Part shown: positions 4,184 to 44,189 of the stretch, one piece after another
How positions within the stretch are numbered: the first letter of the stretch is position 1
How the letters are laid out: every line of letters begins with the position of its first letter
Virus record (IMG/VR): IMGVR_UViG_3300033159_000002
Span: 1 to 50,004 of that record
Direction: 5' to 3' (one strand)
DNA: 50,004 nt
Made by a program: the position numbers and the translations under genes
Notes under the pieces: generated by a model
The model's database searches: none
The model's input: only the letters and a program-made list of their open reading frames with translations
Told to the model about the DNA's origin: nothing

Positions 4184-4239
4184 AAGAAAAAGTAGGGAGA
4201 AAAGCTAAAAAATAAAATTTAGCTTAGAACATGCTTAGC

Positions 4240-9140: not shown

Positions 9141-9569
9141 TCACTTAATATATTTTAATACGACACGCTCATCATGCAGCAACACTACCTGTGTGTGTGT
9201 GTGGGTTTTGAGATGATATAACGCGTGCGGAAACTTTGCATGCATCATTCTCTTCATAAAGACCATTATTAAAACGTTCTGTTGGTATAATAAGTGAAAC
9301 CAACTAGTCGTTGTGTCAAATGGTAAATATAATAGAATTTCACTATGAAGGATTTTATGACTCGTTATAGCTCTTAATATGAAGGGTTTTTTGTTTGAGA
9401 ATGGCGGGTTGCAGTAAGAGTGGTCTGGCCATAGTTTTACTGCTGCATTAAATTTTGTTTTATCTAGGCAAACGTCTGTGAACTTTAGTTCTTGTGTTAT
9501 AATATCATAAAGGGTTTTAGGCGTTGGTTTATTGTCATGAACCCCTTTCGGTGGAAATTTAATTGTCAT
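9141..9569 (-). CDS. Phage Dam-like DNA N6-adenine methyltransferase
   Basis: DNKPTP, FTDVC, W..SYCNPPF catalytic motif, LYLPFDTTTSWF (PF05869-like pattern). Confidence 0.75.
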   Translation of the reverse strand: MTIKFPPKGVHDNKPTPKTLYDIITQELKFTDVCLDKTKFNAAVKLWPDHSYCNPPFSNKKPFILRAITSHKILHSEILLYLPFDTTTSWFHLLYQQNVLIMVFMKRMMHAKFPHALYHLKTHTHTQVVLLHDERVVLKYIK

Positions 9570-9799
9570 TGGGACACCTCAGTACCTCTTGTTTTTAAAT
9601 CTTCTTTTACTGTTTTTCTAAAAATAGCTAACATATATGTTTCATAATATCTAAAAATATTTAAATACTCTAATGGTAATAACGGCGTTATATATGCTAT
9701 TAATTCATAGTCGTTTAGCTCTAGAACTTCTTCACCATATCGTTTTGCAAATTCATGAGCTATTTCGATTATTTTTTGTTCAACTTCTTGTCTTGTCAT
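9566..9799 (-). CDS. Small helical protein, paralog of the C-terminal domain of 2402..2851
   Basis: LELNDYELIAYITPLLPLEYLNIFRYY versus LEMNDNELTEYLVSLLPLQDLDLFRRY. Confidence 0.75.
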   Translation of the reverse strand: MTRQEVEQKIIEIAHEFAKRYGEEVLELNDYELIAYITPLLPLEYLNIFRYYETYMLAIFRKTVKEDLKTRGTEVSQ

Positions 9800-9873: not shown

Positions 9874-10884
9874 TCATATGATCACCTCAAGCTTTCTTAA
9901 CAAGGTTGGTTCTCCTAGCTCATGGCCGCACCTCGGACATTTTCCGCCGAACATTGACTTTATTTCTGATGGAGCTCTTACACCATAATAGTCCTGCCCT
10001 ACCTTTTCAAACCTATACAACTCATATCCGCAGCTTTTACATACGTACCTTATAGGCCCTAAAACCTCTACTATTTCCTTATATCTGTGCCTTATGATCG
10101 TTTCAGAAATATTCAGTGCTTTTGCTACTTCTTTTTGTGATTTCCTATTGTCCATTAGTATAGCCACCACATACACCGCAGCAGCGCTTAACGTTAAGTA
10201 ATTGCCGCTAATTAGCCCATTCTTATACATGTAGTCTATCAGCTCTGCAGCTTTTGTCCCTATAATCGGCGGTAGGTTTAATTTGTCAACTATTTTAGGG
10301 ATATATTTGGTCGGTATTATTGTAGGCCTGAATTCTGGGATAACTGTTTTTATCCTCTTCGTGGCCTGCCAGAACTCGCTTATGGAAACATCAAACTTTG
10401 CCTTAAATTCCTGCAAAGATATAGGCACATTATTCATTTGGCACGAATAGTATAATACTGCGGCAATTAGCGCATTTAAACTTATCCTCCTTTCTAACCC
10501 ATTCTCAATTAGCCTTCTTAGTATAAGTGCGGCAGTTTCTTTCACATGTTTTGGTAGATCTAGTTTTGATGCTTCTCTGTTAAGCCTTGAAAGGTATGTC
10601 ACTAATTTTTTCTCCCTAGTAGATGAGATCCTACTCCAGTTATGTAACCTTTGCATTTTCATTAGCTTTATCCTATCTTTTACCTTAGCATATCTTCCTA
10701 TCGTGGTTGAAAGGCCTTCATCGTGGATTTTTAGGGTCAGTGGGGATCCAGTCCTTTCCCGCTCTAAGACGTCCTCATGATTATATACTCTCCATTCTGG
10801 TCCTAGGTCTACAACTCTGTCCTCTATAACTTCCCCTGTCTCTGTGTCAACGTACTCTCCTCTTTCAGGGTCAAAGATTATCAT
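9874..10884 (-). CDS. tfb: Transcription initiation factor B (TFB/TFIIB) homologue with C-terminal Zn-ribbon fusion
   Basis: [38 protein letters not shown], two cyclin repeats, [25 protein letters not shown], then CKSC...CPRC. Confidence 0.92.
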
Positions 10885-11225
10885 GCCCTCACCCCTTCCT
10901 CGCCCTCTCGTGGAACTAACACGTCATAGTATTCGACGTCGTGGGGTCTTACGAATCTTATAATGAAATTTTTCTTCATTTTTTTCACGTACTCTGGATC
11001 GTGAATACAATAATCTCTGTACATATCAGGGTCGTTGAAACAGCGTATGCTCTCTACTTCCCATTTGAAATGTTTACATTCGCCGAGTGAAAAGTCTCTT
11101 TTTCTTGGGTACGTTTCACTTTCCGCCAAAAGAACATTACACTCTTTGCACCAGATGCCCTCAACACCAATATCGTCCCACTTGACTTCTAACACTTTAC
11201 TCCATTTGGGATCAATAATTACCAT
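10881..11225 (-). CDS. Cys/His-rich putative Zn-binding protein
   Basis: CKEC...CKHFKW...C...C. Confidence 0.65.
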
Positions 11226-11481: not shown

Positions 11482-11608
11482 TTTCAACACCCTCTTTGGA
11501 GATCTTTTCTATCAAAACTAGCACTTTTTTCTTAATCGTAACGCAGTTCATATAGTCAGCGTCTTCGTAGATATTCTCTAAAAGCGTTAACAGAGTGCTC
11601 TTCTTCAT
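11471..11608 (-). CDS. Small protein (45 aa, MKKSTLLTLLENIYEDADY...), absent from the ORF track
   Basis: Fills the operon gap and overlaps both neighbours. Confidence 0.55.
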   Translation of the reverse strand: MKKSTLLTLLENIYEDADYMNCVTIKKKVLVLIEKISKEGVENDG

Positions 11609-11796
11609 ATCTCCTGTACCCTCATTTCGTTGTTTTTGTAATTCTCTTCAACGAAATTTTTCTTAATTTTCTTCATGGACAAGTACGATTTGATAGCTTC
11701 TCTGATTACCTCACTTCTCACTTGTTTAGTATTTATGCAGTATAGGTCTAGTTGCTGTAACAATTCCTCCTCTAATTTAAATGTCACAACTCTCAT
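11605..11796 (-). CDS. CopG/RHH transcriptional regulator
   Basis: MRVVTFKLEEELLQQLD...RSEVIREAIKSYL; RBS GAGGTGA. Confidence 0.88.
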   Translation of the reverse strand: MRVVTFKLEEELLQQLDLYCINTKQVRSEVIREAIKSYLSMKKIKKNFVEENYKNNEMRVQEI

Positions 11797-11818
11797 CTTC
11801 TTCACCTCATGGTAATTC

Positions 11819-12130
11819 TTATTCGTCTTCCTCACCTTTTTGCGGTAAACTCCCCAGTTTACCGTCAAATTCTGATACCATTTGCCTCAAACTTAAATCT
11901 CTTTTCTCTTCAATTAATTGTAACTGTTTTGCGTAATAATGTAATCTTGTCCCGACTTCTGCTTCATCATACTCCATTTTGTTATGTAAGTAGAATTCTA
12001 AATTCTCTATAATCTCTTTCAATTCCTTGTAAATTCTTATTGCCGTCCTATCAATCCTAGTTAATCTCTGAGCCTTATAGGCTAGAGCATACGCTTTCTC
12101 TAAGTGCTGTTGCAAAGTAGTTTCAGCCAT
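11819..12130 (-). CDS. Hypothetical helical protein
   Basis: Operon member with RBS; its C-terminal KLGSLP is encoded by a motif copy. Confidence 0.7.
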   Translation of the reverse strand: MAETTLQQHLEKAYALAYKAQRLTRIDRTAIRIYKELKEIIENLEFYLHNKMEYDEAEVGTRLHYYAKQLQLIEEKRDLSLRQMVSEFDGKLGSLPQKGEEDE

Positions 12131-12410
12131 TCCTCCTCACCTCCTTAATTTCCATTAAATTCTTTCTGTAAACATTGTATAACTCATTTACATGATGACA
12201 TAAGAAGCCGTGGGCTCCAGCTTCACATGAGCAGGAGAAGCGGATCCAGCCATTATCAATAATAATCTCTGTGTGGTGGTATGTAGTCGGCCTAGAGCTA
12301 CTAGCTACGTCTCCGCTTACCCTAATTATTCCATGCTCGTCCTCTTCAATAAGGATTATTTTGACTTTCTTATCGGGTGATATGTATACGTAATTAGCAG
12401 TAGTGCTCAT
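12123..12410 (-). CDS. SWIM zinc-finger protein
   Basis: FSCSCEAG..FLCHH (CxC-xn-CxH). Confidence 0.8.
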   Translation of the reverse strand: MSTTANYVYISPDKKVKIILIEEDEHGIIRVSGDVASSSRPTTYHHTEIIIDNGWIRFSCSCEAGAHGFLCHHVNELYNVYRKNLMEIKEVRRNG

Positions 12411-12763
12411 TCTCCCACCTCAACCTTCACGAATTTTATTTTCCCTTGATCTAGGAATTGCTTTATCTCATCCTCTTTTAGTACACGACCTTCCTCTAGC
12501 CTTATAGTTAGAATTAGTGCTATTATTATATCCCCTGCATTTGCAACTATACTTATTCTATTCTCTTTCAGCTGCGTAGAACACATCGTATTTATTAAGT
12601 CAACAGTAGCCTTATGGCCAACAGCATTAACCAGATCCTCAGCATTCTTTATTGTTTCACAGAATTCCTTCTCATCGGTCTCTTCGAATTTTGCTGTAAC
12701 CTGTCTATGTTTCTGTAACTTCAGCATGCTAGGACTGAAAGAATTAGTTAAGAAGACAGTCAT
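12407..12763 (-). CDS. acrIII-1: AcrIII-1 (DUF1874) viral ring nuclease, anti-type III CRISPR
   Basis: FLTNSFSPSML, NAVGHKAT (catalytic His), ENRISI, GD and RLEEGRVL motifs of the STIV B116/SIRV1 gp29 family. Confidence 0.9.
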   Translation of the reverse strand: MTVFLTNSFSPSMLKLQKHRQVTAKFEETDEKEFCETIKNAEDLVNAVGHKATVDLINTMCSTQLKENRISIVANAGDIIIALILTIRLEEGRVLKEDEIKQFLDQGKIKFVKVEVGE

Positions 12764-13113: not shown

Positions 13114-13221
13114 TGTTTAAAGAGTATTACTTATTTATAAACTTTTCTACCCTCTCAAAGGGATATTTCATTTTCAGCTTACTCCGTCCGCTTTAAATAG
13201 TAATAAAGATAGTAATATATT

Positions 13222-16927: not shown

Positions 16928-16959
16928 TTTCCTAATCAGTTAAACAAAAAGTTTAAATA
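16928..16959 (+). promoter_or_regulatory. Conserved early-type promoter TTTCCTAA-N16-TTTAAA (copy 1 of 6)
   Basis: Also at 24506-24540(-), 24586-24617(+), 25138-25169(+), 25811-25842(+) and 27017-27048(-), with fixed 24-nt spacing. Confidence 0.85.
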
Positions 16960-24470: not shown

Positions 24471-24654
24471 CTTTTTCATCCCCATAATAATGTTTGTTGA
24501 ACTAGGATTTAAACTTTTTGGTAAATAAGTTAGGAAACAACTTCCCTTCATTTTTAGCTGCGGTTCATGATATCCTCCCTTATTATTTCCTAACCAGTTG
24601 ACCAAAAAGTTTAAATACCACTTCAATAAATGGTATACGTGGGGGTAAAAAGAT

Positions 24655-24978: not shown

Positions 24979-25204
24979 TATCTGATTAAAATTTTTTGCA
25001 AAATTCTCACTTTTTTCCCTAACATCAGCGCCGTTTTAATCTAATTTTGTTATTATACAACACACTTTCGTTTCCATGCTAGTTTTCTTATTCAGTATAT
25101 TATTAGTTGTAGTTACTCTAATACTCTCCCTTATTTGTTTCCTAACCTGTTTTGCAAAAACTTTAAATACTTGTTAAACAGAGAGTATAAATAAAGGTGA
25201 AAAA

Positions 25205-25480: not shown

Positions 25481-25875
25481 TAAAAATTACGTTTTTTTAA
25501 GCTTAAACTAAATCATTATACTGTTTAAGTTAATCTCCCTTTCTCTTTAAATCCTAATCTAAGGCTGTTTATTCTTCCGTTCTTATCATATGCTATAGAG
25601 TTTTCAATTGTTAAGTAAGCAGTGGGAAGCGCTACTCATGGGATCCCAGCTTTCTATGCTCATTAGAAAAATTCAATAAACTCCCCAGTTTACCGCAAAA
25701 AATTCAAGTCAATTCTGCGCTTGAGGAACCTTTGCGCTACATGTGCAAAAAATGGGCCAGCGGTGAAGGCGAATTATATTAATATAATAACGAATAATTG
25801 TTCGTATTTATTTCCTAACTAGTTGGTAGAAAAGTTTAAATATTGGTTTACCAAAGAATATTATGGGGATAAAAA

Positions 25876-26995: not shown

Positions 26996-27333
26996 ATATA
27001 ATGTTTGTTGAACTAGTATTTAAACTTTTTGCAAAATAAGTTAGGCAATAATTAAGTGATTGATTCTTAATCTAGTTAAAGCTTTGATAGGTCCATCTGT
27101 TTTAATCTGAGGACCATTAAAAAAACTGCAAGCGTCAAGGTGGCGGGAAGAAGGATAAGGTCCTACAGCTGCTGGAGTTGTTTCTCTTCCGGCCTGAAGC
27201 GAAACCCAGTGGGGTTTTAAAGTTTCTCTTTAGAAGTATAAGACGGGAAAAAGCGAAATGGGAAATAAGAGGGATTTAAGTCAATTTCCTAAGAGCCAAA
27301 TTCAATTTTTTACAACCTATTGTTATAATACAA

Positions 27334-31009: not shown

Positions 31010-31101
31010 AATTGTATATATTCCTTATATATATAATATAAGGGAAAGATCTGACAAAACGAATGATAAGCTCAGTGAGGAGGAAATCAGCTCTCTTGTT
31101 T

Positions 31102-31138
31102 TTTATTTTTTAACTTATCCTCCTACTTCTTATTAATG
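31102..31138 (+). promoter_or_regulatory. Leaderless T-rich promoter class TTTATTTTTTA...CCTACTTCTT..ATG (representative)
   Basis: Similar sequences precede ATGs at 2973, 4183(-), 31136, 38317, 39420, 39886 and 44190. Confidence 0.8.
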
Positions 31139-32256: not shown

Positions 32257-35200
32257 GTGTTCTTCAGACCACATTTTACATATATTGAAGCAGCTACAGC
32301 AGAACAAACACAGGCTAGGGAAGCTGCTGCAAACGAAGAATGGAGGAAAAGGCTCCTCCTAAGACCTTCTGAGATTAAAATACAACACAAATCGATAACG
32401 TCTATACCTAGAGAAGTAATAATAAAGCTTACCCACCTTTCAGCACATGAGCAAGAACCAATCGTTAACCCGCCAGCACATATAACCCTAGTACGTATCA
32501 TAAGGCCTCGTGAGAGTGAGCAGGAACCAAACCCGCCAGCACATGAAAGACAAAGGCGTATCTATTTCTTTGGAGGATCTTCCCCTAATTTACCTACCGA
32601 TCTCCAGAAGCCTAGGCCGTTTATAACATATGTTCCTAATAGTTTTTGGGATCAAATTACCCGTAAGCAAGAAACAAACTCATCTGCTGTACACCACACA
32701 GAAGGGCTTAGTCCATGGGCACGTAGTCATATAGCAATGGCGCCTGATGAAAGAACTCCAACACCTAAACTAACCCCGTTCGACCAACTTCATATGGCAG
32801 CATCTGGTATCGAAGGGTCCCCAACACTGAATTCTGGTCCTGTAATACCACACATTTATAACCCTCCACCAATAATGCCAGTCAATTCCCCACCATCACA
32901 GCCACCAGCTCACAACAATGCTAGTCCTCCACCACCGCCTCCATCCAATAACACACCTTCGCAATCCAGTAACCCATTCGGCTTCTTCGGTTCTTTATTT
33001 GGTTCAGTCGTTAACGCTGTGACTAACGCAGTAAGTGGAGGTAATAATTCGGGAGGAGGTCAATCAAATAACCCGCTCACGTCGTTCCTCAGCTCTGCTG
33101 CAAATGCTGTGTCTAGCATGGCGAATGCTATTGGAAACGCAATAAGTCATGGCCAAATCGTTGCTAATGCGGCAACTTCTGGAGGCCAACCCAGTAACCC
33201 ATTCGGTGCGATAGGTTCGTTCTTTAGTTCAGTTGGTAATGATATTACCAATGCTGCATCCACATTTGTTAGTGATGTAACTAACGCAGTACAGAGTGCT
33301 GGGAGCGCAATAACTGGAGCATTGTCAACTGCTGGAAATGCAATAAAGAACGCTGCGTCCACAATTGGTAGCGACATAACTAACGCAGCAAAGGATGTTG
33401 GAAACGCAGTAACTAGCGCATTATCAACTGCTGGGAAAGCAGTAACTGGTGCACTGACGGATGTCGGGAACACAGTAATTGGAGCACTTTCAGCTGCGAA
33501 TAACGCAATACAGAACGCGTATAACTCCGTTTACGGAAACAAAATCCAGCAAGAGAAGCAGCAATTAGAGAACCAGCTCAAACAATTACAGCAGCAAGCG
33601 CAGCAAGAGTTAAACCAAATTCAACAGGAGAAACAGCAAGTACAAAACCAGTTGCAGCAAGTGCAGCAGCAAGCCCAACAAGAGTTAAACCAAATTCAAC
33701 AGGAGAAACAGCAAGTACAAAACCAGTTGCAGCAAGTGCAGCAGCAAGCCCAACAAGAGTTAAGTCAGCTTAACCAAGCCCAACAACAAATACAAAGTCA
33801 GTTGCAACAAGCCCAACAACAGGGTCAGCAGGAATTAATGCAAATAAGCCAACAGGAACAACAATTACAAGCTGAGTTACAACAAATACAACAATATGAA
33901 GCACAAGCCGAGCAGATGCTACAACAGAATCCTAACAATCCACAATTACAGAGCTACTTACAACAATTGCAGCAACAGCAACAACAAATACTGCAAAACT
34001 TAGCTCAGCTTAACCAGGCACAGCAGGAAGTACAGACGTACTTACAGCAAACTCAGCTTCAAGCACAGCAGGAGTTAATGCAAATTAACCAAGCCCAACA
34101 ACAAATACAAAGTCAGTTACAATTAGCTGAACAGCAAGCCCAACAAGACTTAGCTCAGCTTAACCAAGCCCAACAACAAGTACAGACGTACTTACAACAA
34201 GTGCAACAACAAGCCCAACAGGATCTGAACAAGCTTAACCAAGCCCAACAACAAATACAAAGTCAGTTGCAACAAGCCCAACAACAAATACAACAAGAGT
34301 TAGCGCAACTCAACAAACAACAACAAGGGGGTAACCCACTCCAACAGTTCTTTACTGACGTAGCTGATGTTTCAGCATTAATAGGCTATTACGCTACTGA
34401 AGGATTGGGCGGTGTCGGAGAGGAGTTGGCTCACCTTGTACAGGGTAAGGGTCTTGAGAATTTCAGCCAAGCGATTGCACAGTTCAATAAGGCAGGAGGG
34501 CAAAACATCGCTAAGATTGTAGGTGATGTCACGGAAGTCGCGTTACCTGCGATAATTACTGCGGTCGTTGCACCTGAACTACTACCCGCCGAGCTCATCG
34601 GCGAAGCATCATCGGTAGGTATCGGCGAAGTCGCTACAAAGCTCACCACAGGTCACTGGCAATCACTACAGCAAGTGTTACAGGAGGCAAATGAGGGTGG
34701 TGTGCTAGGCGCTATCGGCGAAGCTGGCGGTCTAGCATTAGAGTCTGGCCTAGCGAAGGGGGCAGGCGCATTAACGAAGTTGTTGACAGGTAGCGAAGAC
34801 TTGGCGTCGCAAGTGGCACACCTAACACCAGTGTGGAGAGCGGCAGGCGGTGCGTTAACTAACGTGGCACTACAGTTACCTTTCTCGCAGAACCCTGAGC
34901 AGCTGGCAATCGCTGGAATCATAGGCGGTTTGGCAGGTGGCTTAGGCCCTGGTATAGCGGGCAAATTGATGAGCAAGATAGACGAGATTAGAGGGACTGG
35001 TGGTGTAGCAGAACTAGAAACGCTCACATCACCCCTCACTGGCGAGACCACAGAAGCGTGGAAGATAACGCTACCCAGCGGTGACACGGTTTACTTAGTA
35101 CCAAAAACTACGTTCGGAGAAGGAGATATTAGCGACTTCGTAGACGCATACACAGGTAAAACTACTTTAGCGACTCACGTGACTCCATCGCGTGATTTCC

Positions 35201-36651
35201 TTAATGAGGTTGCTAATGGAGAAGCGCTTGTAAAGGTAGCAGGCGAACCGCCTAAAGATGAATGGGCGTTCCGAGAGTGGGGACATTTAAGGAATTTATA
35301 CCTCTCGCCTGGCGAAAGTGAGGACGTGGGAGTAGCGTTAACTGCATACTCAGGACTAAAGGACACAGAGCCTGGCATACCTGAGTTCAGCATAGGTCGT
35401 TCAAGTGTGAAAAACGTACTCTACAGATTCCTTCACCCCTTTGATAGAGGTGGTATAATAGGTATAAAGACTGATGCTGTTGATATTGAACCTCCTGAGG
35501 AGTTAGTCGATTATATTTTGGCTAAGAAAGCAGAGTATTTGGCGAACGTAGAATCTAACTGGTTGAAAAAATTCGCGAATAACTTCGCCATGAAGGAGTT
35601 ACTTAACGATCCAATATATGGCCCCATGTATAAAGAATACATAAACGAGCTGCTGACCTATAGTGCTGAGCACGGGGAACCTGTAATCGACCCTGAGGGG
35701 TTATTAGGCCTCACTCACGAGAGGCAGATAGAACTCGCTCCTGGTGCTAAGTTGAGAGGAACTGGAGAAGTGTATAATATATGGGTGAGACAGACACCAG
35801 AACTATTTAGAAACCTACCTGGGCCTCTGCGTGATATCCTCTCCGACTGGTCGAGATTCAAGTATGTCGGAGCAGAAATCATCCCTGGCGAGCCTCTTAA
35901 CTTGTTTGAGGACACAGAGAGTAATGAGACAGGAGGAGAGAGAATACCAGAATTGGGTGGTGAAGAGGGAGGAGAGAGAATACCAGAATTGGGTGGTGAA
36001 GAGGGAGGAGAGAGAATACCTAAGTTGCAAGGTGAGGAAGGAGGTGAAGAGGGAGGAGAGAGAATACTTAACGAGGGTGGGGAATGGAGGCTACCAGAAC
36101 CGATTTTACGGGAACCGTTCTGGATGGAACGTGAACCTCAACTAGAGAGTTCAGAGTTACCAACATATACTTCACCTCCACGGGACATTTATTCGTCCCC
36201 CTCACCAATTAGCAACCCACCACCTCCAATAATATCATCCCCATCGGTACCCACCATTAACCCACCATCTTCAACGTTGCCACCGATACCTCCTATTAAT
36301 TCACCGCCTTCGCCATCGCCAATAACATCACCGCCACCTTCACCCACCATTTCACCGCCTCCTCCAATCAACTCACCGCCCTCACCGCCATCCATCAGTT
36401 CACCACCGCCAATAAATTCTCCTCCACCACCCCCTATTATTAATATACCACCATCTGAGTACATACAGATAGAATCACAATCATCACCACCACCGCCAAT
36501 ATTCTCTTCGTCAACTGTTACCGAAAACGAATCGCCAATGCCGATGGGCCCACCACCAATATTGCCAGCGATAATGCCAGGTGGTTTTGGAGGAGGCGGA
36601 AACAACAACATGGAAATTAGCGGGATGGCAGGCGAGGTGATCTACCTGTGA
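32257..36651 (+). CDS. Giant multidomain protein (1464 aa): Pro-rich, amphipathic 11-mer repeats, Gln-rich coiled coil, hydrophobic G/A helices, globular (ART-like?) domain, Pro-rich tail
   Basis: Sequence composition; 75-bp tandem repeat near 33604-33763; 36-bp repeats near 35932-36066. Confidence 0.9.
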   Translation: MFFRPHFTYIEAATAEQTQAREAAANEEWRKRLLLRPSEIKIQHKSITSIPREVIIKLTHLSAHEQEPIVNPPAHITLVRIIRPRESEQEPNPPAHERQRRIYFFGGSSPNLPTDLQKPRPFITYVPNSFWDQITRKQETNSSAVHHTEGLSPWARSHIAMAPDERTPTPKLTPFDQLHMAASGIEGSPTLNSGPVIPHIYNPPPIMPVNSPPSQPPAHNNASPPPPPPSNNTPSQSSNPFGFFGSLFGSVVNAVTNAVSGGNNSGGGQSNNPLTSFLSSAANAVSSMANAIGNAISHGQIVANAATSGGQPSNPFGAIGSFFSSVGNDITNAASTFVSDVTNAVQSAGSAITGALSTAGNAIKNAASTIGSDITNAAKDVGNAVTSALSTAGKAVTGALTDVGNTVIGALSAANNAIQNAYNSVYGNKIQQEKQQLENQLKQLQQQAQQELNQIQQEKQQVQNQLQQVQQQAQQELNQIQQEKQQVQNQLQQVQQQAQQELSQLNQAQQQIQSQLQQAQQQGQQELMQISQQEQQLQAELQQIQQYEAQAEQMLQQNPNNPQLQSYLQQLQQQQQQILQNLAQLNQAQQEVQTYLQQTQLQAQQELMQINQAQQQIQSQLQLAEQQAQQDLAQLNQAQQQVQTYLQQVQQQAQQDLNKLNQAQQQIQSQLQQAQQQIQQELAQLNKQQQGGNPLQQFFTDVADVSALIGYYATEGLGGVGEELAHLVQGKGLENFSQAIAQFNKAGGQNIAKIVGDVTEVALPAIITAVVAPELLPAELIGEASSVGIGEVATKLTTGHWQSLQQVLQEANEGGVLGAIGEAGGLALESGLAKGAGALTKLLTGSEDLASQVAHLTPVWRAAGGALTNVALQLPFSQNPEQLAIAGIIGGLAGGLGPGIAGKLMSKIDEIRGTGGVAELETLTSPLTGETTEAWKITLPSGDTVYLVPKTTFGEGDISDFVDAYTGKTTLATHVTPSRDFLNEVANGEALVKVAGEPPKDEWAFREWGHLRNLYLSPGESEDVGVALTAYSGLKDTEPGIPEFSIGRSSVKNVLYRFLHPFDRGGIIGIKTDAVDIEPPEELVDYILAKKAEYLANVESNWLKKFANNFAMKELLNDPIYGPMYKEYINELLTYSAEHGEPVIDPEGLLGLTHERQIELAPGAKLRGTGEVYNIWVRQTPELFRNLPGPLRDILSDWSRFKYVGAEIIPGEPLNLFEDTESNETGGERIPELGGEEGGERIPELGGEEGGERIPKLQGEEGGEEGGERILNEGGEWRLPEPILREPFWMEREPQLESSELPTYTSPPRDIYSSPSPISNPPPPIISSPSVPTINPPSSTLPPIPPINSPPSPSPITSPPPSPTISPPPPINSPPSPPSISSPPPINSPPPPPIINIPPSEYIQIESQSSPPPPIFSSSTVTENESPMPMGPPPILPAIMPGGFGGGGNNNMEISGMAGEVIYL

Positions 36652-38257: not shown

Positions 38258-38316
38258 AAAATAGTTTTCAAAAAAAGAGAGCTTTTATTTTTAAGTATTA
38301 ACTCCAAATTCTTCAT

Positions 38317-39344: not shown

Positions 39345-39419
39345 AATTTATTTTTTGTGGGGGTACCCCCACACCTCCATTGCTAATTTATTTTTTAATT
39401 CCTTTTCCTATTTCTTCTT

Positions 39420-39809: not shown

Positions 39810-39885
39810 TTATGGGGACACCCCCAATGTGGGGGAACACCCCCAATGCTAATTTATTTTTTAACTTATTCTCCTACTTCTTCTT

Positions 39886-40470
39886 ATGAAAGTCCTAGTT
39901 GTAGACCTCGATAACACTCTATTTAACACTCAAGCAAGGTATAACGCATGCTTAGCGGAACAAGGTGTCGCGTCTTTAGACTCCCTCCACGGGGAGGCTA
40001 GGAGGAAGTTCTGGGAGTGTTACCAGTCACCACGGTACATGGACTTCGACATCCCTAACAAGGGCGTACTTGACACAGTAAAAAAGGCGAAAGAAAAGGG
40101 TTGGGTCGTTATACTGCTGACTGGAAGGAACGGTGAGACACAGAGAGAAAAAACACTCGAACAACTACAGAAATTTAACGTGCCATATGACTACTTGATA
40201 ATGAGGAACCCCAATGACTATAGGAAAGAGGTAGAGTATAAGCGGGAAATACTTAACGGTCTGAAGGGGTTAGGGGATGTTATACTCATAGACGACAACC
40301 CGGAGGTAAGAAAGTTAGTATCAAAAGCGTTCCCTCCAGACGAAAGTCCAACAATTGATGAGGCAAGGGATCAGGGTGAACTAAACGTTATGTTTTACAC
40401 CAAATACCCACCTGTTATAACTAAGGGGGTGAGCAGAGTTGAAGATGAAGAAGTTTTTGATCTTGAGTAG
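39886..40470 (+). CDS. HAD-superfamily phosphatase (PNKP 3'-phosphatase/acid phosphatase-like)
   Basis: VVDLDNT (motif I), LLTGR (II), K (III), IDD (IV). Confidence 0.88.
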   Translation: MKVLVVDLDNTLFNTQARYNACLAEQGVASLDSLHGEARRKFWECYQSPRYMDFDIPNKGVLDTVKKAKEKGWVVILLTGRNGETQREKTLEQLQKFNVPYDYLIMRNPNDYRKEVEYKREILNGLKGLGDVILIDDNPEVRKLVSKAFPPDESPTIDEARDQGELNVMFYTKYPPVITKGVSRVEDEEVFDLE

Positions 40471-43400
40471 TTTACTTCTTTTCATACTTCTCATGCCTTT
40501 AGAAGTGTATGCAGTACAGTCCTTTCTGACGTTTTACGTTAACGTTATGGACTACGGTACTGTGCTCATGTTGCAGAACCAGAGTAACGTGTTAACAATT
40601 TACGAGATCCCCTCCTCTTTCTCCTCAGTTCCATCATTTCAGGGTGTGCAGACTACGGGGAAGGCGTTGGAGGCTGTGGAAAACGTCACGCTGAAGAGCG
40701 GTGAAGTGGCACTGGTACATGAATACGGAGTATCGGGATTCTCGACACAAAACTTCCTTTACCAACAAGTGAACGTACCCAGAATCGTTACACACTCAAA
40801 TTCCACTACGTCCTATTATTCGTCTTCTACGATTTATGTAACACCAGATCAAGGATACCAGTTACAGTTCACTCCATGGTTCGGTATTCAAAACCAGCCT
40901 GTGGATAGTGTCGAGTCAACAGGTTGGAAAGTATTTCCATATTGGCAAAACGGCGAACTGGTGGTGAACAGTACTGGAGCAAGTACTTATGGTCAATACA
41001 TTGCTTGGAAATATTCTCCAATATCAAACGTCATCAACATCACCATTCATATAACATCATTCCCAGTACAAAGTAATAATCCTGGTATTCTTATCGCCTC
41101 ACCTAACGTAGGAGACCAAACAAACATTGCTAATAATGGTTTTTACGCGTTGACAGTTAACTTCTATGACAACAAGATAGCGTTCCATTCTCCAACATCT
41201 GGTTTCATAATACTTGACTCTTCTCTTCCTCAACCTAACCCTAATTATCCGTTCACTTTCAGCGTCATCCTGACAGAGAACAGTGCTGGAAACGTTACAG
41301 TACAGAGCGTATACATCAACTCAACGGCTTACACAGTAAATGTAAACACTCCTTTCCCGTGGAGCCAGATAGGCTACGTGGGGATAACACCAGATATGGG
41401 TAACTTATTCTACGTCTCCTACTTCAGTGTCTCTCCAGCACCTTACGGTGGTGTTGAACAGTTCGTGAACAACGTGGAGTCAACATCATGGAAAGTGTTA
41501 CCTTATTGGGAAAACGGCGAACTGGTGGTGAACAGTACTGGAGCAAGTATTTATGGACAGTACATTGATTGGAGATATTCGCCGATAAGTAACACCATCA
41601 ACATAACGATCCACATAACATCGTACCCAACACAGAATGGTAATCCTGGTATCGTTGTCTACTCACCTACCGTAGGAGACCAATCATATGACGGTGTTAC
41701 TGGTTTTTATGCGTTATTAGTTGACTTCTACGGCAACACGATATGGTTCCATTCCCCAACATCTAGTTACACGCAACTTTACACTTCTCTGCCTCAACCT
41801 AACCCCAACTACCCCTTTACCTTCAGCGTAATACTTACGGAGAATTCGGCGGGTAATGTTACCGTACAGAGCGTATACATCAATTCAACAGCATACCCCG
41901 TAAATGTAAACACTCCTTTCCCGTGGAATCAGATAGGCTACGTAGGGATCGATGCCGAACAGTCTAACTTATTCTACGTCTCCTATTTCGGCGTCTCTCC
42001 TTTCCAGTATGGTGTAGTCAAATACACGGTCAACTCAATATCATTACCTTCAATGCCCGATACTTCTTCAGCCACCGTTCTGATTTCTCAGCTCTCCAAC
42101 GGCTCTTACGCCATCCTCGGCGTGTACAACGGGACGTGGCATGAGCTTAACCTACCGTTTGCCAATCCTAATGGAAAGTTCACAGTTACGTTCAACCCAG
42201 TGGGCCCAGTGAACATAACGTTGAAGTCCTCCAACGTCTTATCTTACGGAGCTTTATTCTCTCCAGGTAACGGCGTGTTGTTAGAGGCTCAAAACGCTAT
42301 ACCTCCGTCAAACCCGTCGAATTGGGCACCGTTAGGCTATGTGGGTACCAACGGAGAGGTAGGAGGAGGTGTTGATTGGGCTTCGCCACAATTTACTCCA
42401 GCTACGCTCAACAGTATAAACTATTACCAAGGTGGTACAATAGCGACGACTGACTGGGGTACCACGAACTTCACTTATTACTCTGCATCAATTAATCAGC
42501 ATCTAAACGGACAGATGAATTACGTTACTGTTGGTATAGGTTTCACATCAGGTTGGGCTAATGCGCCCTCTGGCTATTACCCTTTCCAAAACGGCTTTAT
42601 CGACATGGTATACATAGAAAATAACAGTATTGCGACGTCACAAACACCTCCTAACGTCTCTTCGATGTTGTTCTTCTTCGACCCCACATACATCACGCAA
42701 CAAGGTCAATACATAAACCCCTTCACGAACCAGACCTACCAGCTGACTGGTTCCCTAACTAGGGAAGTTAACGATATCGGCGTCATTACGTTCCTCGATC
42801 CAAAAGTCACAAACCCTGTGATTTATGTCCCACCGTTCACAGAGGTAATCGTGAGGAACTCTACTAGCTCACAAATATTCATAAATTACGAGACGTTTCC
42901 TTACCAGACTGCAACGGTACCACCTGGTAATTACCAGATCACGGTCATCCTACTTTACACAGCTTATTCCTTCGTTTTAATAAACTGGCAAGGCTGGAAC
43001 GTGACTATTTACGAAAACGGACAACCAATGATAGTAAACGACCCGATAACACAACAAATACAGCCCTTCGACACACAAGGGCTCTTATCCGCACAAATTG
43101 TGGCAAACCCCAATACGAAAGTGTTGACCATATACCTTCAACCGCTCTCCTCTGGCGTAGGTACTTATTCACCTAAGGAGATAGCGTTCCCGAAACCCGC
43201 ACCGCAGTTAATACTCCCGTTAACCCAACAAACGCCGTTCAGTCTGTCAACACTTACGGTAAGCGGTATAGTTACAGTAGCAATGGTTTTAGCAGTTGTG
43301 ATCGCGTTAGCCAGAGCTAACCAAGATCTGCTCGCAAGTATAGCTGCAGGAGGTGCAGTAGTCGCAGTGGTGGGTATTATCATACACCTCATGCCAATAA

Positions 43401-43471
43401 TCTTCATAGGGTCAGTCATGGTTATAATATCTACAACATATAGGTTTGCGAGGAGGAGCAGCCAGACATGA
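40439..43471 (+). CDS. Large surface glycoprotein, candidate receptor-binding/adsorption protein with a duplicated beta-sandwich domain
   Basis: Signal peptide; ~185-aa internal duplication (~40910-41440 and ~41475-42000); many sequons; 3 C-terminal TM. Confidence 0.8.
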   Translation: MKMKKFLILSSLLLFILLMPLEVYAVQSFLTFYVNVMDYGTVLMLQNQSNVLTIYEIPSSFSSVPSFQGVQTTGKALEAVENVTLKSGEVALVHEYGVSGFSTQNFLYQQVNVPRIVTHSNSTTSYYSSSTIYVTPDQGYQLQFTPWFGIQNQPVDSVESTGWKVFPYWQNGELVVNSTGASTYGQYIAWKYSPISNVINITIHITSFPVQSNNPGILIASPNVGDQTNIANNGFYALTVNFYDNKIAFHSPTSGFIILDSSLPQPNPNYPFTFSVILTENSAGNVTVQSVYINSTAYTVNVNTPFPWSQIGYVGITPDMGNLFYVSYFSVSPAPYGGVEQFVNNVESTSWKVLPYWENGELVVNSTGASIYGQYIDWRYSPISNTINITIHITSYPTQNGNPGIVVYSPTVGDQSYDGVTGFYALLVDFYGNTIWFHSPTSSYTQLYTSLPQPNPNYPFTFSVILTENSAGNVTVQSVYINSTAYPVNVNTPFPWNQIGYVGIDAEQSNLFYVSYFGVSPFQYGVVKYTVNSISLPSMPDTSSATVLISQLSNGSYAILGVYNGTWHELNLPFANPNGKFTVTFNPVGPVNITLKSSNVLSYGALFSPGNGVLLEAQNAIPPSNPSNWAPLGYVGTNGEVGGGVDWASPQFTPATLNSINYYQGGTIATTDWGTTNFTYYSASINQHLNGQMNYVTVGIGFTSGWANAPSGYYPFQNGFIDMVYIENNSIATSQTPPNVSSMLFFFDPTYITQQGQYINPFTNQTYQLTGSLTREVNDIGVITFLDPKVTNPVIYVPPFTEVIVRNSTSSQIFINYETFPYQTATVPPGNYQITVILLYTAYSFVLINWQGWNVTIYENGQPMIVNDPITQQIQPFDTQGLLSAQIVANPNTKVLTIYLQPLSSGVGTYSPKEIAFPKPAPQLILPLTQQTPFSLSTLTVSGIVTVAMVLAVVIALARANQDLLASIAAGGAVVAVVGIIIHLMPIIFIGSVMVIISTTYRFARRSSQT

Positions 43472-44008: not shown

Positions 44009-44189
44009 TGTGTATAATGTATGTTTGATATAGTATATAAAGCTTATGACATACACTTTTGTATTACAGCCTACAACTCCTAAATTATTTTATAAAAATA
44101 GGGATTAAGGGAGACAAACCTCACCCTTCCATGGTAAGGAGGAGGTCAGCTTATTTTTTATTTTTTAGCTTTTCCTCCTACTTCTTCTT

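Follow-up and report, generated by a model that had tools for sequence, protein, structure and literature searches.

Genes for the archaeal transcription initiation factor B (TFB) have been annotated in a number of viruses. The Sulfolobales viruses YNP1 and YNP2 and the rudiviruses ARV2, ARV3, MRV1 and SSRV1 encode TFBs, and so do some Halorubrum tailed viruses; an earlier note on the DNA analysed here, which called basal factors a rarity among the genes of crenarchaeal viruses, is therefore outdated on this point. The rudiviral TFBs have been noted as uncharacterised (PMC9501531). The closest described relatives of the protein treated here are YNP1 gp65 ('putative transcription initiation factor B') and YNP2 gp50 ('Zinc finger, TFIIB-type domain protein'), and no paper analysing the architecture or the origin of either was found in the searchable literature. 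The window (the whole stretch of DNA that was analysed, 50,004 nucleotides) is the complete IMG/VR viral contig IMGVR_UViG_3300033159_000002, of about 50 kb, from a hot-spring archaeal virus, and carries at positions 9874..10884 of the minus strand the gene of a predicted chimeric, TFB2-derived initiation factor of 336 residues (plus stop), hereafter vTFB. A virus-encoded TFB is not new in itself, because YNP1 and YNP2 have annotated TFB genes and some 30 protein clusters share the architecture.

Comparison with the known systems revealed several differences that define the viral protein. YNP1 gp65 and YNP2 gp50 are orthologues of vTFB along the full length (66% and 59% identity, respectively) and share with it the N-terminus devoid of cysteines, the C-terminal zinc module and the local synteny, but bear different signatures in the recognition helix. 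The TFB2 proteins of Sulfolobales (orthologues of Saci_1341 and SSO0946) fall in the same clade and are 57-75% identical to vTFB over the B-reader, the B-linker and the cyclin core. Unlike vTFB, they have a canonical four-cysteine ribbon, about 291 residues, no C-terminal module and an invariant recognition helix, and their genes lie in a chromosomal neighbourhood made of TBP, Gar1, tfb2 and a TFE-beta-like gene. The rudiviral proteins (ARV2, ARV3, MRV1 and SSRV1) are also encoded by viruses of Sulfolobales and have similar N-terminal 35 residues, whereas their cores are TFB1-derived and 20-26% identical, with two cysteines, a very divergent linker and no zinc module. Sulfolobales TFB3 provides a precedent for a specialised TFB paralogue in the same hosts, where it co-occurs with a TFB1 of degenerate ribbon; it keeps the four-cysteine ribbon and lacks the B-reader and the helix-turn-helix (HTH), which is the reverse of vTFB, and the homology holds at the family level only. 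Phage sigma factors and the TFIIB or TBP mimics of large eukaryotic DNA viruses may be viewed as analogous, in that the virus supplies a promoter-recognition subunit to a host-type polymerase, although different protein families or polymerases are involved. In BFVD, the structural matches next in rank are TFIIBs of giant viruses. No description of a TFB2 core origin, a TFB1-like cysteine-less N-terminus, a host-derived zinc module, a host-virus mosaic or a diversification of the HTH was found in the searchable literature, and the origin of the core, the type of the N-terminus, the origin of the module, the mosaic and the diversification of the recognition helix appear to be new here. The earlier note had foreseen neither the descent of the core from TFB2 nor the TFB1-like N-terminus nor the derivation of the zinc module from the host.

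The ATG of vTFB is the first possible start, with an in-frame stop 14 codons upstream. Profile and structure matches bore out the full TFB core described in the earlier note, with a B-reader, a B-linker, two cyclin folds and an HTH. The protein matched the Pfam TFIIB repeat (PF00382) in two stretches (E 1.5e-25; 89.4 bits, cut-off 23.6), NCBIfam PRK00423 'transcription initiation factor IIB' over residues 2-275 (E 7e-65) and the core of Pyrococcus woesei TFB (1d3u_B and 1ais_B, E ~1e-28). The AlphaFold model (AF2), obtained with a 70-sequence alignment, has a mean predicted local distance difference test score (pLDDT) of 79, and its core superposed on 1d3u_B with a template modelling (TM) score of 0.83 and a root mean square deviation of 2.5 Å. 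All the domains lie on the minus strand. According to alignments and AF2, a cysteine-less remnant of the B-ribbon forms a β-hairpin at residues 1-21 (10822..10884) and is followed by the B-reader, with its GPEWR motif, and the B-linker (residues 22-85, 10630..10821), where the family-invariant residues are kept. The first cyclin fold, defined by profile and structure matches, comprises residues 86-180 (10345..10629), and the second, residues 181-275 (10060..10344), ends in the HTH that would read the TFB recognition element (BRE), the turn and the start of the recognition helix being placed at residues 258-270 (10075..10113). The zinc-ribbon module closes the protein (residues 276-336, 9877..10059). 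In sequence, GPEWR and the invariant R44, G46, H54, D55, G57, T60 and I62 of the B-reader and B-linker are common to cellular TFBs, and all family-invariant residues of the B-reader, the B-linker and the core are present. Cysteines 282, 285, 316 and 319 belong to the C-terminal module and C148 is the only other one. The cysteine-less N-terminal ribbon and the extra CxxC...CxxC domain past the HTH, both pointed out in the earlier note, are thus real features of the protein; the ribbon remnant is also truncated, and the extra domain spans 61 residues with the spacing CxxC-x30-CxxC.

A closer inspection of the N-terminus showed that it covers positions 11-41 of the 43 of the Zn_Ribbon_TF profile (PF08271), with 27.3 bits against a Pfam cut-off of 29. 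The protein starts just past the place expected for the first CxxC knuckle, and D-T-E-T stands at the second. The alignment shows no cysteine or histidine ligand in the remnant, where the first CxxC knuckle and the first strand are absent; AF2 placed strands at residues 2-5 and 10-13 (pLDDT ~80). The hairpin is not decaying, and varies less among the viral sequences than among those of TFB2 (column entropies of 0-0.5 versus 1-3). The TFB1 of Sulfolobus is itself non-canonical, with only two cysteines and changes in ligands 1 (Cys to Ser) and 4 (Cys to Thr) (PMC6101594). Since this housekeeping factor works with two cysteines, the full zinc site is not obligatory in the Sulfolobus lineage, and the viral DTETG motif would correspond to the two-cysteine TFB1 type minus the remaining cysteines. 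Over residues 2-35, identity to the viral consensus is 72% for TFB1 (68-76%), 56% for TFB2 (44-65%) and 85% for the TFB of the rudivirus ARV3 (rudiviral range over the N-terminal 35 residues, 74-85%). The linker (residues 36-85) is 67% identical in TFB2, 36% in TFB1 and ~18% in the ARV3 protein, and the core (residues 86-274) 68%, 36% and ~24%, respectively. Mainly from these segment identities, the N-terminus of vTFB is probably of the TFB1 or rudiviral type, convergence being the alternative; three N-terminal positions qualified as diagnostic of TFB1 versus TFB2 and divided 2 against 1 (Fisher p = 0.018 versus the rest of the protein). A more distant relative (P0096, 46% identity), carried by two virus-like contigs together with genes of Cas4, ThyX and ribbon-helix-helix (RHH) proteins, combines a two-cysteine N-terminus with the C-terminal module, which suggests that the module was gained before the final cysteines were lost.

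The nearest cellular relatives of vTFB are TFBs of about 291 residues from Acidianus, Sulfurisphaera, Stygiolobus, Ca. Aramenus and S. acidocaldarius, which are 52-63% identical and lack the module. This group corresponds to TFB2, as indicated by the source names (two members are called 'IIB 2'), by the translation of published primers and by the TFE-beta-like neighbourhood. The published quantitative PCR primers for sso0946 (tfb2) translate to peptides typical of the ~291-residue group, and a published tfb1 primer translates to 'ARTLDE', typical of the other (TFB1) group. An exact search of metagenomes with the tfb1 primer gave no match; TFB1 orthologues of 307-312 residues with a two-cysteine ribbon were recovered from metagenomes with a degenerate DNA pattern for the two-cysteine N-terminus. 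Among the matches listed in an alignment-based scan of genome contigs for labelled TFB1 and TFB2, most were TFBs from outside Sulfolobales and one Stygiolobus TFB2 was of use. In Sulfurisphaera javensis, tfb2 is flanked directly by a Gar1-like and a TFE-beta-like gene and lies three genes downstream of TBP. According to the literature TFE-beta is Sso0944, and its adjacency to sso0946 would follow from the locus numbers. The S. javensis segment (L006, 2752-7318) reads TBP, DUF5622, two opposite-strand genes, Gar1-like, tfb2 and TFE-beta-like (Rpc34), so that three basal transcription factor genes lie inside ~4.5 kb.

Maximum-likelihood (ML) analysis of residues 36-274 gave a tree in which a branch with 100/100 support splits TFB2 and the viral clade from TFB1 and the rudiviral TFBs. 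In this tree, which provides the phylogeny against TFB1 and TFB2 proposed in the earlier note, the vTFB core is placed with TFB2; the viral clade groups with the TFB2 of Acidianus and Aramenus (support 91/94), and the rudiviral TFBs, together with other two-cysteine, mobile-element-like TFBs, nest inside TFB1 (95/99). The approximately unbiased (AU) test did not reject a position of the viral clade as sister to all cellular TFB2 (p = 0.3), and the claim is therefore limited to an origin within or sister to Sulfolobales TFB2. On these comparisons the core of vTFB is assigned to the TFB2 type and not to TFB1, and the protein would be a derivative of the TFB2 group, not an orthologue, in view of its zero ribbon cysteines, 336 residues, extra module and location in a viral gene string.

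An exchange with the host gene is suggested by a viral-type TFB on a 31.6-kb metagenomic contig (P0018), which has the viral N-terminus and the viral zinc module. Its N-terminus is 93-97% identical to that of a viral relative (P0017) versus 53-59% to Acidianus TFB2, and residues ~61-255 are 90-100% identical to the TFB2 of Acidianus sp. HS-5 versus 47-86% to P0017; in the tree it is placed among Acidianus TFB2. The simplest reading would be a recent recombination that swapped the core for the host allele and kept the two virus-specific ends, which also suggests Acidianus as the host of this virus. As an observation on the TFB1 side, a dozen divergent two-cysteine TFBs of 279-314 residues with varied recognition helices were present in a single metagenome, sample ERZ1684502 (loci L104, L107, L110, L116, L121, L124, L127, L138, L145, L153, L157 and L159). 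Those sampled cluster in the tree with the rudiviral TFBs inside TFB1, and the literature seems to understate greatly the diversity of the mobile-element-type TFBs that descend from TFB1.

The C-terminal module, used alone as a query, retrieved stand-alone proteins of 55-75 residues with 67-81% identity, and the identity to the free-standing family over residues 276-330 is 63-81%; the matches to nine stand-alone proteins (E 1e-13 to 1e-31) are confined to these residues. Module and free-standing family share the identical CxxC-x30-CxxC spacing and an invariant FEKVGQDFYGVRTPSE block. With one member (P0248) as query, 41 members were found, and the family, annotated as 'hypothetical protein', is encoded on the chromosomes of Acidianus, Saccharolobus, S. 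acidocaldarius, S. tengchongensis, Metallosphaera, Sulfuracidifex, Sulfurisphaera, Stygiolobus and Ca. Aramenus. The gene is placed tail-to-tail with that of a ~200-residue protein in Metallosphaera, S. acidocaldarius and S. shibatae, followed by the genes of the CCA-adding enzyme and LigT, and the S. javensis gene has the same neighbours; this synteny, conserved across four genera, shows that the gene belongs to the host and is inherited vertically. In S. javensis it does not adjoin tfb2, and on IMG/VR viral contigs the module was found only fused to TFB. The free-standing protein (SUSAZ_06160, SJAV_20960) differs from the viral module in standing alone with ~70 residues and a basic tail in the CCA-adding enzyme/LigT cluster, and in its net charge (+5 to +8 versus +3). 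Searches of the module against Pfam and NCBIfam gave only sub-threshold generic zinc-ribbon matches. From this sequence relationship, the zinc module appears to have been captured from a small, basic, chromosomal protein of Sulfolobales. Its end, LEVII, resembles the tail of cellular TFBs (IEVxL) and that of the free-standing protein (IKIxL) alike, so that an insertion into the TFB tail and an end-to-end fusion would be equally compatible with it. Confidence in the full-length model is higher for the N-hairpin and the C-terminal tail than it is for the tail in the model of the isolated module, a hint that the zinc module might pack against the N-hairpin as a composite ribbon. As a side observation, SJAV_20960 of S. 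javensis (AP031322; L005, 9950-10171) is annotated as a 56-residue product without the first CxxC; the upstream in-frame sequence encodes this motif (IKYVCRKCG), and no ATG, GTG or TTG is present between the prior stop and the motif, which indicates a non-canonical start or a mis-annotation.

The most marked differences with respect to cellular TFBs were found in the helix predicted to read the DNA. The start of the recognition helix, TEVT[IV]RNRY, is near-invariant in 18 TFB2 and 24 other archaeal TFBs. The column entropy at positions 260, 262, 263 and 266 is 0 in the 18 TFB2 and at most 0.74 in the 24 other TFBs, versus 1.8, 2.2, 1.6 and 2.3, respectively, in the viral clade (core mean 1.05); only the viral clade is hypervariable at these four positions. 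R265 and Y268 do not vary there, and the variants are fixed within viral subclades. The subclade of the window has the signature [SA]E[TA][TI]IR[HY]RY (SETIIRHRY in vTFB), that of YNP1 has SDVTIRN[AST]Y (SDVTIRNSY in YNP1 itself), that of YNP2 has S[ED]L[VSP][IL]R[KMT]R[YL] (SELVLRMRY in YNP2 itself), and one further viral subclade has the canonical TEVTIRNRY. The corresponding valine and arginine of human TFIIB reportedly contact the BRE. This diversification is the pattern that would be expected of a retuned promoter specificity.

The same architecture was found well beyond the window. A search of 5.8 billion proteins gave, in addition to YNP1 and YNP2, 29 clusters with 59-96% identity and 95-100% coverage, and all of them have the start MI[IV]FD..RGE..DTETGEV and the C-terminal module. 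In total, some 30 independent clusters from JGI, ENA, NCBI and Logan, together with the complete genomes of YNP1 and YNP2, bear it. Compared with a relative 96% identical in protein sequence, the ratio of nonsynonymous to synonymous substitutions (dN/dS) is 0.06 overall, with 0.04 for the N-terminus, 0.06 for the core and 0.06 for the module. Therefore vTFB is an intact, selected gene under strong purifying selection, including the N-hairpin, the B-reader and the B-linker. A misassembled fusion or a decaying pseudogene, the outcome named beforehand in the earlier note as fatal to the case, is excluded by the ~30 clusters, the two complete genomes and the dN/dS values, and its probability is close to nil: the architecture is identical in many independent assemblies, the synteny is conserved and dN/dS stays at 0.04-0.11. 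No evidence in favour of an artefact was found in vTFB; two cluster representatives (P0016 and P0025) are aberrant at the C-terminus, and the short ORFs P0245 and P0246 are fragments of such genes.

An exploratory survey of the 70 nucleotides upstream of operon-leading ORFs, made by inspection, showed two recurrent types of promoter in the window. Class A consists of a purine-rich BRE and a perfect TATA box, CAAAAAG-TTTAAATA, and precedes genes at 16-27 kb, with TAACnnGTT-like elements ~12 nt upstream and a CTnGTTnAnCA element downstream. Its repeats (16945-16959, 24603-24617, 25155-25169 and 25828-25842, and 24506-24520 and 27017-27031 on the minus strand) stand before small genes and a 666-residue ORF, and three copies are present in YNP1 and one in YNP2. 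Class B has no purine-rich BRE and consists of TTTTTATTTTTTAR, followed ~8 nt on by a pyrimidine tract (TCCTCCTACTTCTTCTT) abutting the ATG. Its boxes (2937-2950, 31100-31113, 38282-38295, 39385-39398, 39851-39864 and 44155-44168, and 4205-4218 on the minus strand) precede large structural-type operons, including those with the ORFs of 1464 and 1010 residues and an AAA ATPase. Observed versus shuffled counts were 12 versus 4.0 for class A, and 14 versus 6.0 and 36 versus 8.0 for the class B elements. In YNP1 and YNP2 both classes again precede orthologous genes; SMV1, a virus without a TFB gene, showed neither. For SYV1, which is YNP1, a strong consensus of early promoters, of class A type, has been reported (PMC11065993), and the class A repeats of the window resemble this early, anti-defence-gene type. 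A candidate host-type promoter, recognised by consensus inspection only, lies at 13114..13160 of the minus strand (GAAAAG then TATAAATA), 26 nt before the first start codon, and would drive the gene string from 13113 to 6798 that holds vTFB. A candidate cascade from host TFB to vTFB and on to the class B promoters would fit this arrangement, seen as a co-occurrence in three related genomes.

Taken together, these data lead us to propose, with a probability of about 0.5, that vTFB is an active alternative initiation factor that would work with host TBP and host RNA polymerase (RNAP) and change the reading of promoters. In this scenario, the host-type promoter would express vTFB within the long string of non-structural genes, the cyclin core would bind host TBP on TATA boxes, and the conserved N-hairpin, B-reader and B-linker would recruit and activate host RNAP. 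The zinc module, at the end of the HTH and adjoining the upstream DNA in the geometry of the TBP-TFB-DNA complex, might add a contact to DNA or to the host partner of the free-standing protein and so offset the reduced ribbon. The net effect would be a factor under viral control that directs transcription towards certain promoters, the candidate targets being the T-rich class B promoters, devoid of a purine-rich BRE, ahead of the large structural-type operons. The earlier note had put forward a sigma-like switch or a dominant-negative inhibitor of host TFB; the constrained B-reader, B-linker and N-hairpin, the subclade-specific diversification of the HTH and the two promoter classes lean towards an active factor. 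Several points weigh against it. The B-ribbon, the main element for recruitment of RNAP, is left without zinc ligands and first strand, and recruitment may suffer; the variability of the HTH could stem from relaxed constraint; binding of vTFB to TBP, RNAP and DNA is predicted from the sequence only; and the role of the zinc module is entirely inferred. The model of the isolated module is poor (pLDDT 66), and its best Foldseek matches in the PDB, a rubredoxin-like and an MCM zinc site, reached E 0.3 and were counted as no match. AF2 confidence is low at residues 25-60, as would be expected for a B-reader and B-linker that become ordered only on RNAP. The class B boxes showed no common BRE-like motif in their upstream sequence, and what ties them to vTFB is a co-occurrence in three related genomes versus one unrelated control; cellular TFB2 itself has no known function.

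The remains of the ribbon can also be read the other way, as those of a competitive inhibitor that would occupy TBP-TATA complexes or RNAP, initiate poorly because of its crippled ribbon and shut off host transcription. All zinc ligands and the first ribbon strand are lost, the N-terminal ribbon of TFB is credited in the literature with the recruitment of RNAP to the promoter, and archaeal viruses are described to use global RNAP repressors such as ATV RIP. Nevertheless, a pure blocker needs neither B-reader nor B-linker and both are kept at dN/dS ~0.06, the ribbon remnant is hyper-conserved instead of decaying, the virus relies on the same RNAP, TBP and TATA boxes, and subclade-specific changes in the HTH are unexpected for a generic blocker, all of which makes this possibility rather improbable. 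The TFB2 ancestry of the core raises instead the possibility of a hijacked host regulon, with vTFB as a deregulated mimic of the cell-cycle-regulated TFB2 that would turn on, at the wrong phase, the genes dependent on TFB2 (G1/S, replication-related). In its favour, the core comes from TFB2 and still exchanges sequence with host tfb2, and the canonical TEVTIRNRY helix persists in one viral subclade; in the literature, tfb2 (Saci_1341) is among seven cyclically expressed transcription factors and its transcript drops after UV. YNP1 and YNP2 reportedly carry homologues of aCcr1, an RHH regulator of the cell cycle, and related viruses enlarge cells; the use of aCcr1 homologues by large spindle-shaped viruses on the Sulfolobales cell cycle would be a parallel. 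We consider this doubtful, because most subclades, that of the window included, altered the DNA-reading positions that are invariant in TFB2, which is hard to reconcile with the reading of the same promoters; in addition, the N-terminus is not TFB2-like and there is no defined TFB2 regulon. A further and still tentative idea, in the manner of a Rosetta stone, takes the fusion as a guide to the free-standing zinc-ribbon protein of ~70 residues, which might be an unrecognised accessory of basal transcription. The virus would have hard-wired it onto a TFB2 core, leaving the B-ribbon free to decay and giving a self-sufficient factor for late genes or for cell-cycle hijacking, retuned in each subclade; the free-standing protein could then be a partner of TFB2 or TFB that contacts upstream DNA or RNAP.

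Regarding its genomic context, vTFB is virus-encoded, as it lies on a whole viral contig related to YNP1 and YNP2 (~80% DNA identity over long stretches) and with a viral gene set. Short stretches of DNA are shared with monocaudaviruses, and the window also encodes an STIV B116-like protein, RHH proteins, a Dam-type methyltransferase, an integrase-like protein and an AAA ATPase. A search for tRNA genes in the window gave none. The vTFB gene is located inside a tightly packed string of minus-strand genes (13113 to 6798), with the local order coiled-coil protein, 114-residue protein, TFB and Dam methyltransferase, which is the same in YNP1. The Cys/His-rich ORF of 114 residues immediately upstream (10881..11225, minus strand) is 87% identical to YNP1 gp64, and its stop overlaps the start codon of vTFB (ATGA), so that the two are probably translationally coupled. 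Downstream, a 77-residue ORF (9566-9799) separates vTFB from a Dam-type DNA N6-adenine methyltransferase with an NPPF motif (9141..9569, minus strand), syntenic with YNP1 gp66. The string also holds, on the minus strand, an RHH (CopG-type) protein (11605-11868), homologous to small TFB-adjacent proteins in YNP2 (gp51) and YNP1, and the STIV B116-like protein (12407-12763, Pfam E 1e-20). On the plus strand, the two very large ORFs of 1464 residues (32257-36651) and 1010 residues (40439-43471) gave no match in a Pfam search; their syntenic counterparts, large ORFs in YNP1 and YNP2, bear doubtful annotations (SbcC, AcuC). The G+C content is ~34-40% in positions 1-30000 of the window and ~42-48% in 30001-50004, the half common to YNP1 and YNP2, and this shift suggests differing histories of the variable and the conserved modules of the genome.

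Lacking an RNA polymerase of their own, archaeal viruses time their gene expression in ways that are largely unknown, and the viral TFBs mentioned in the literature have never been characterised. The vTFB family would represent a basal factor rebuilt from three host-derived pieces that still exchanges sequence with the host gene, and whose DNA-reading helix diversifies in a strongly conserved protein, the pattern expected of a promoter-specificity subunit. The small zinc-ribbon protein of the host, nameless so far, becomes a candidate for a new player in Sulfolobales transcription, and vTFB itself may serve as a natural experiment on how far the zinc ribbon of TFB/TFIIB can be reduced.

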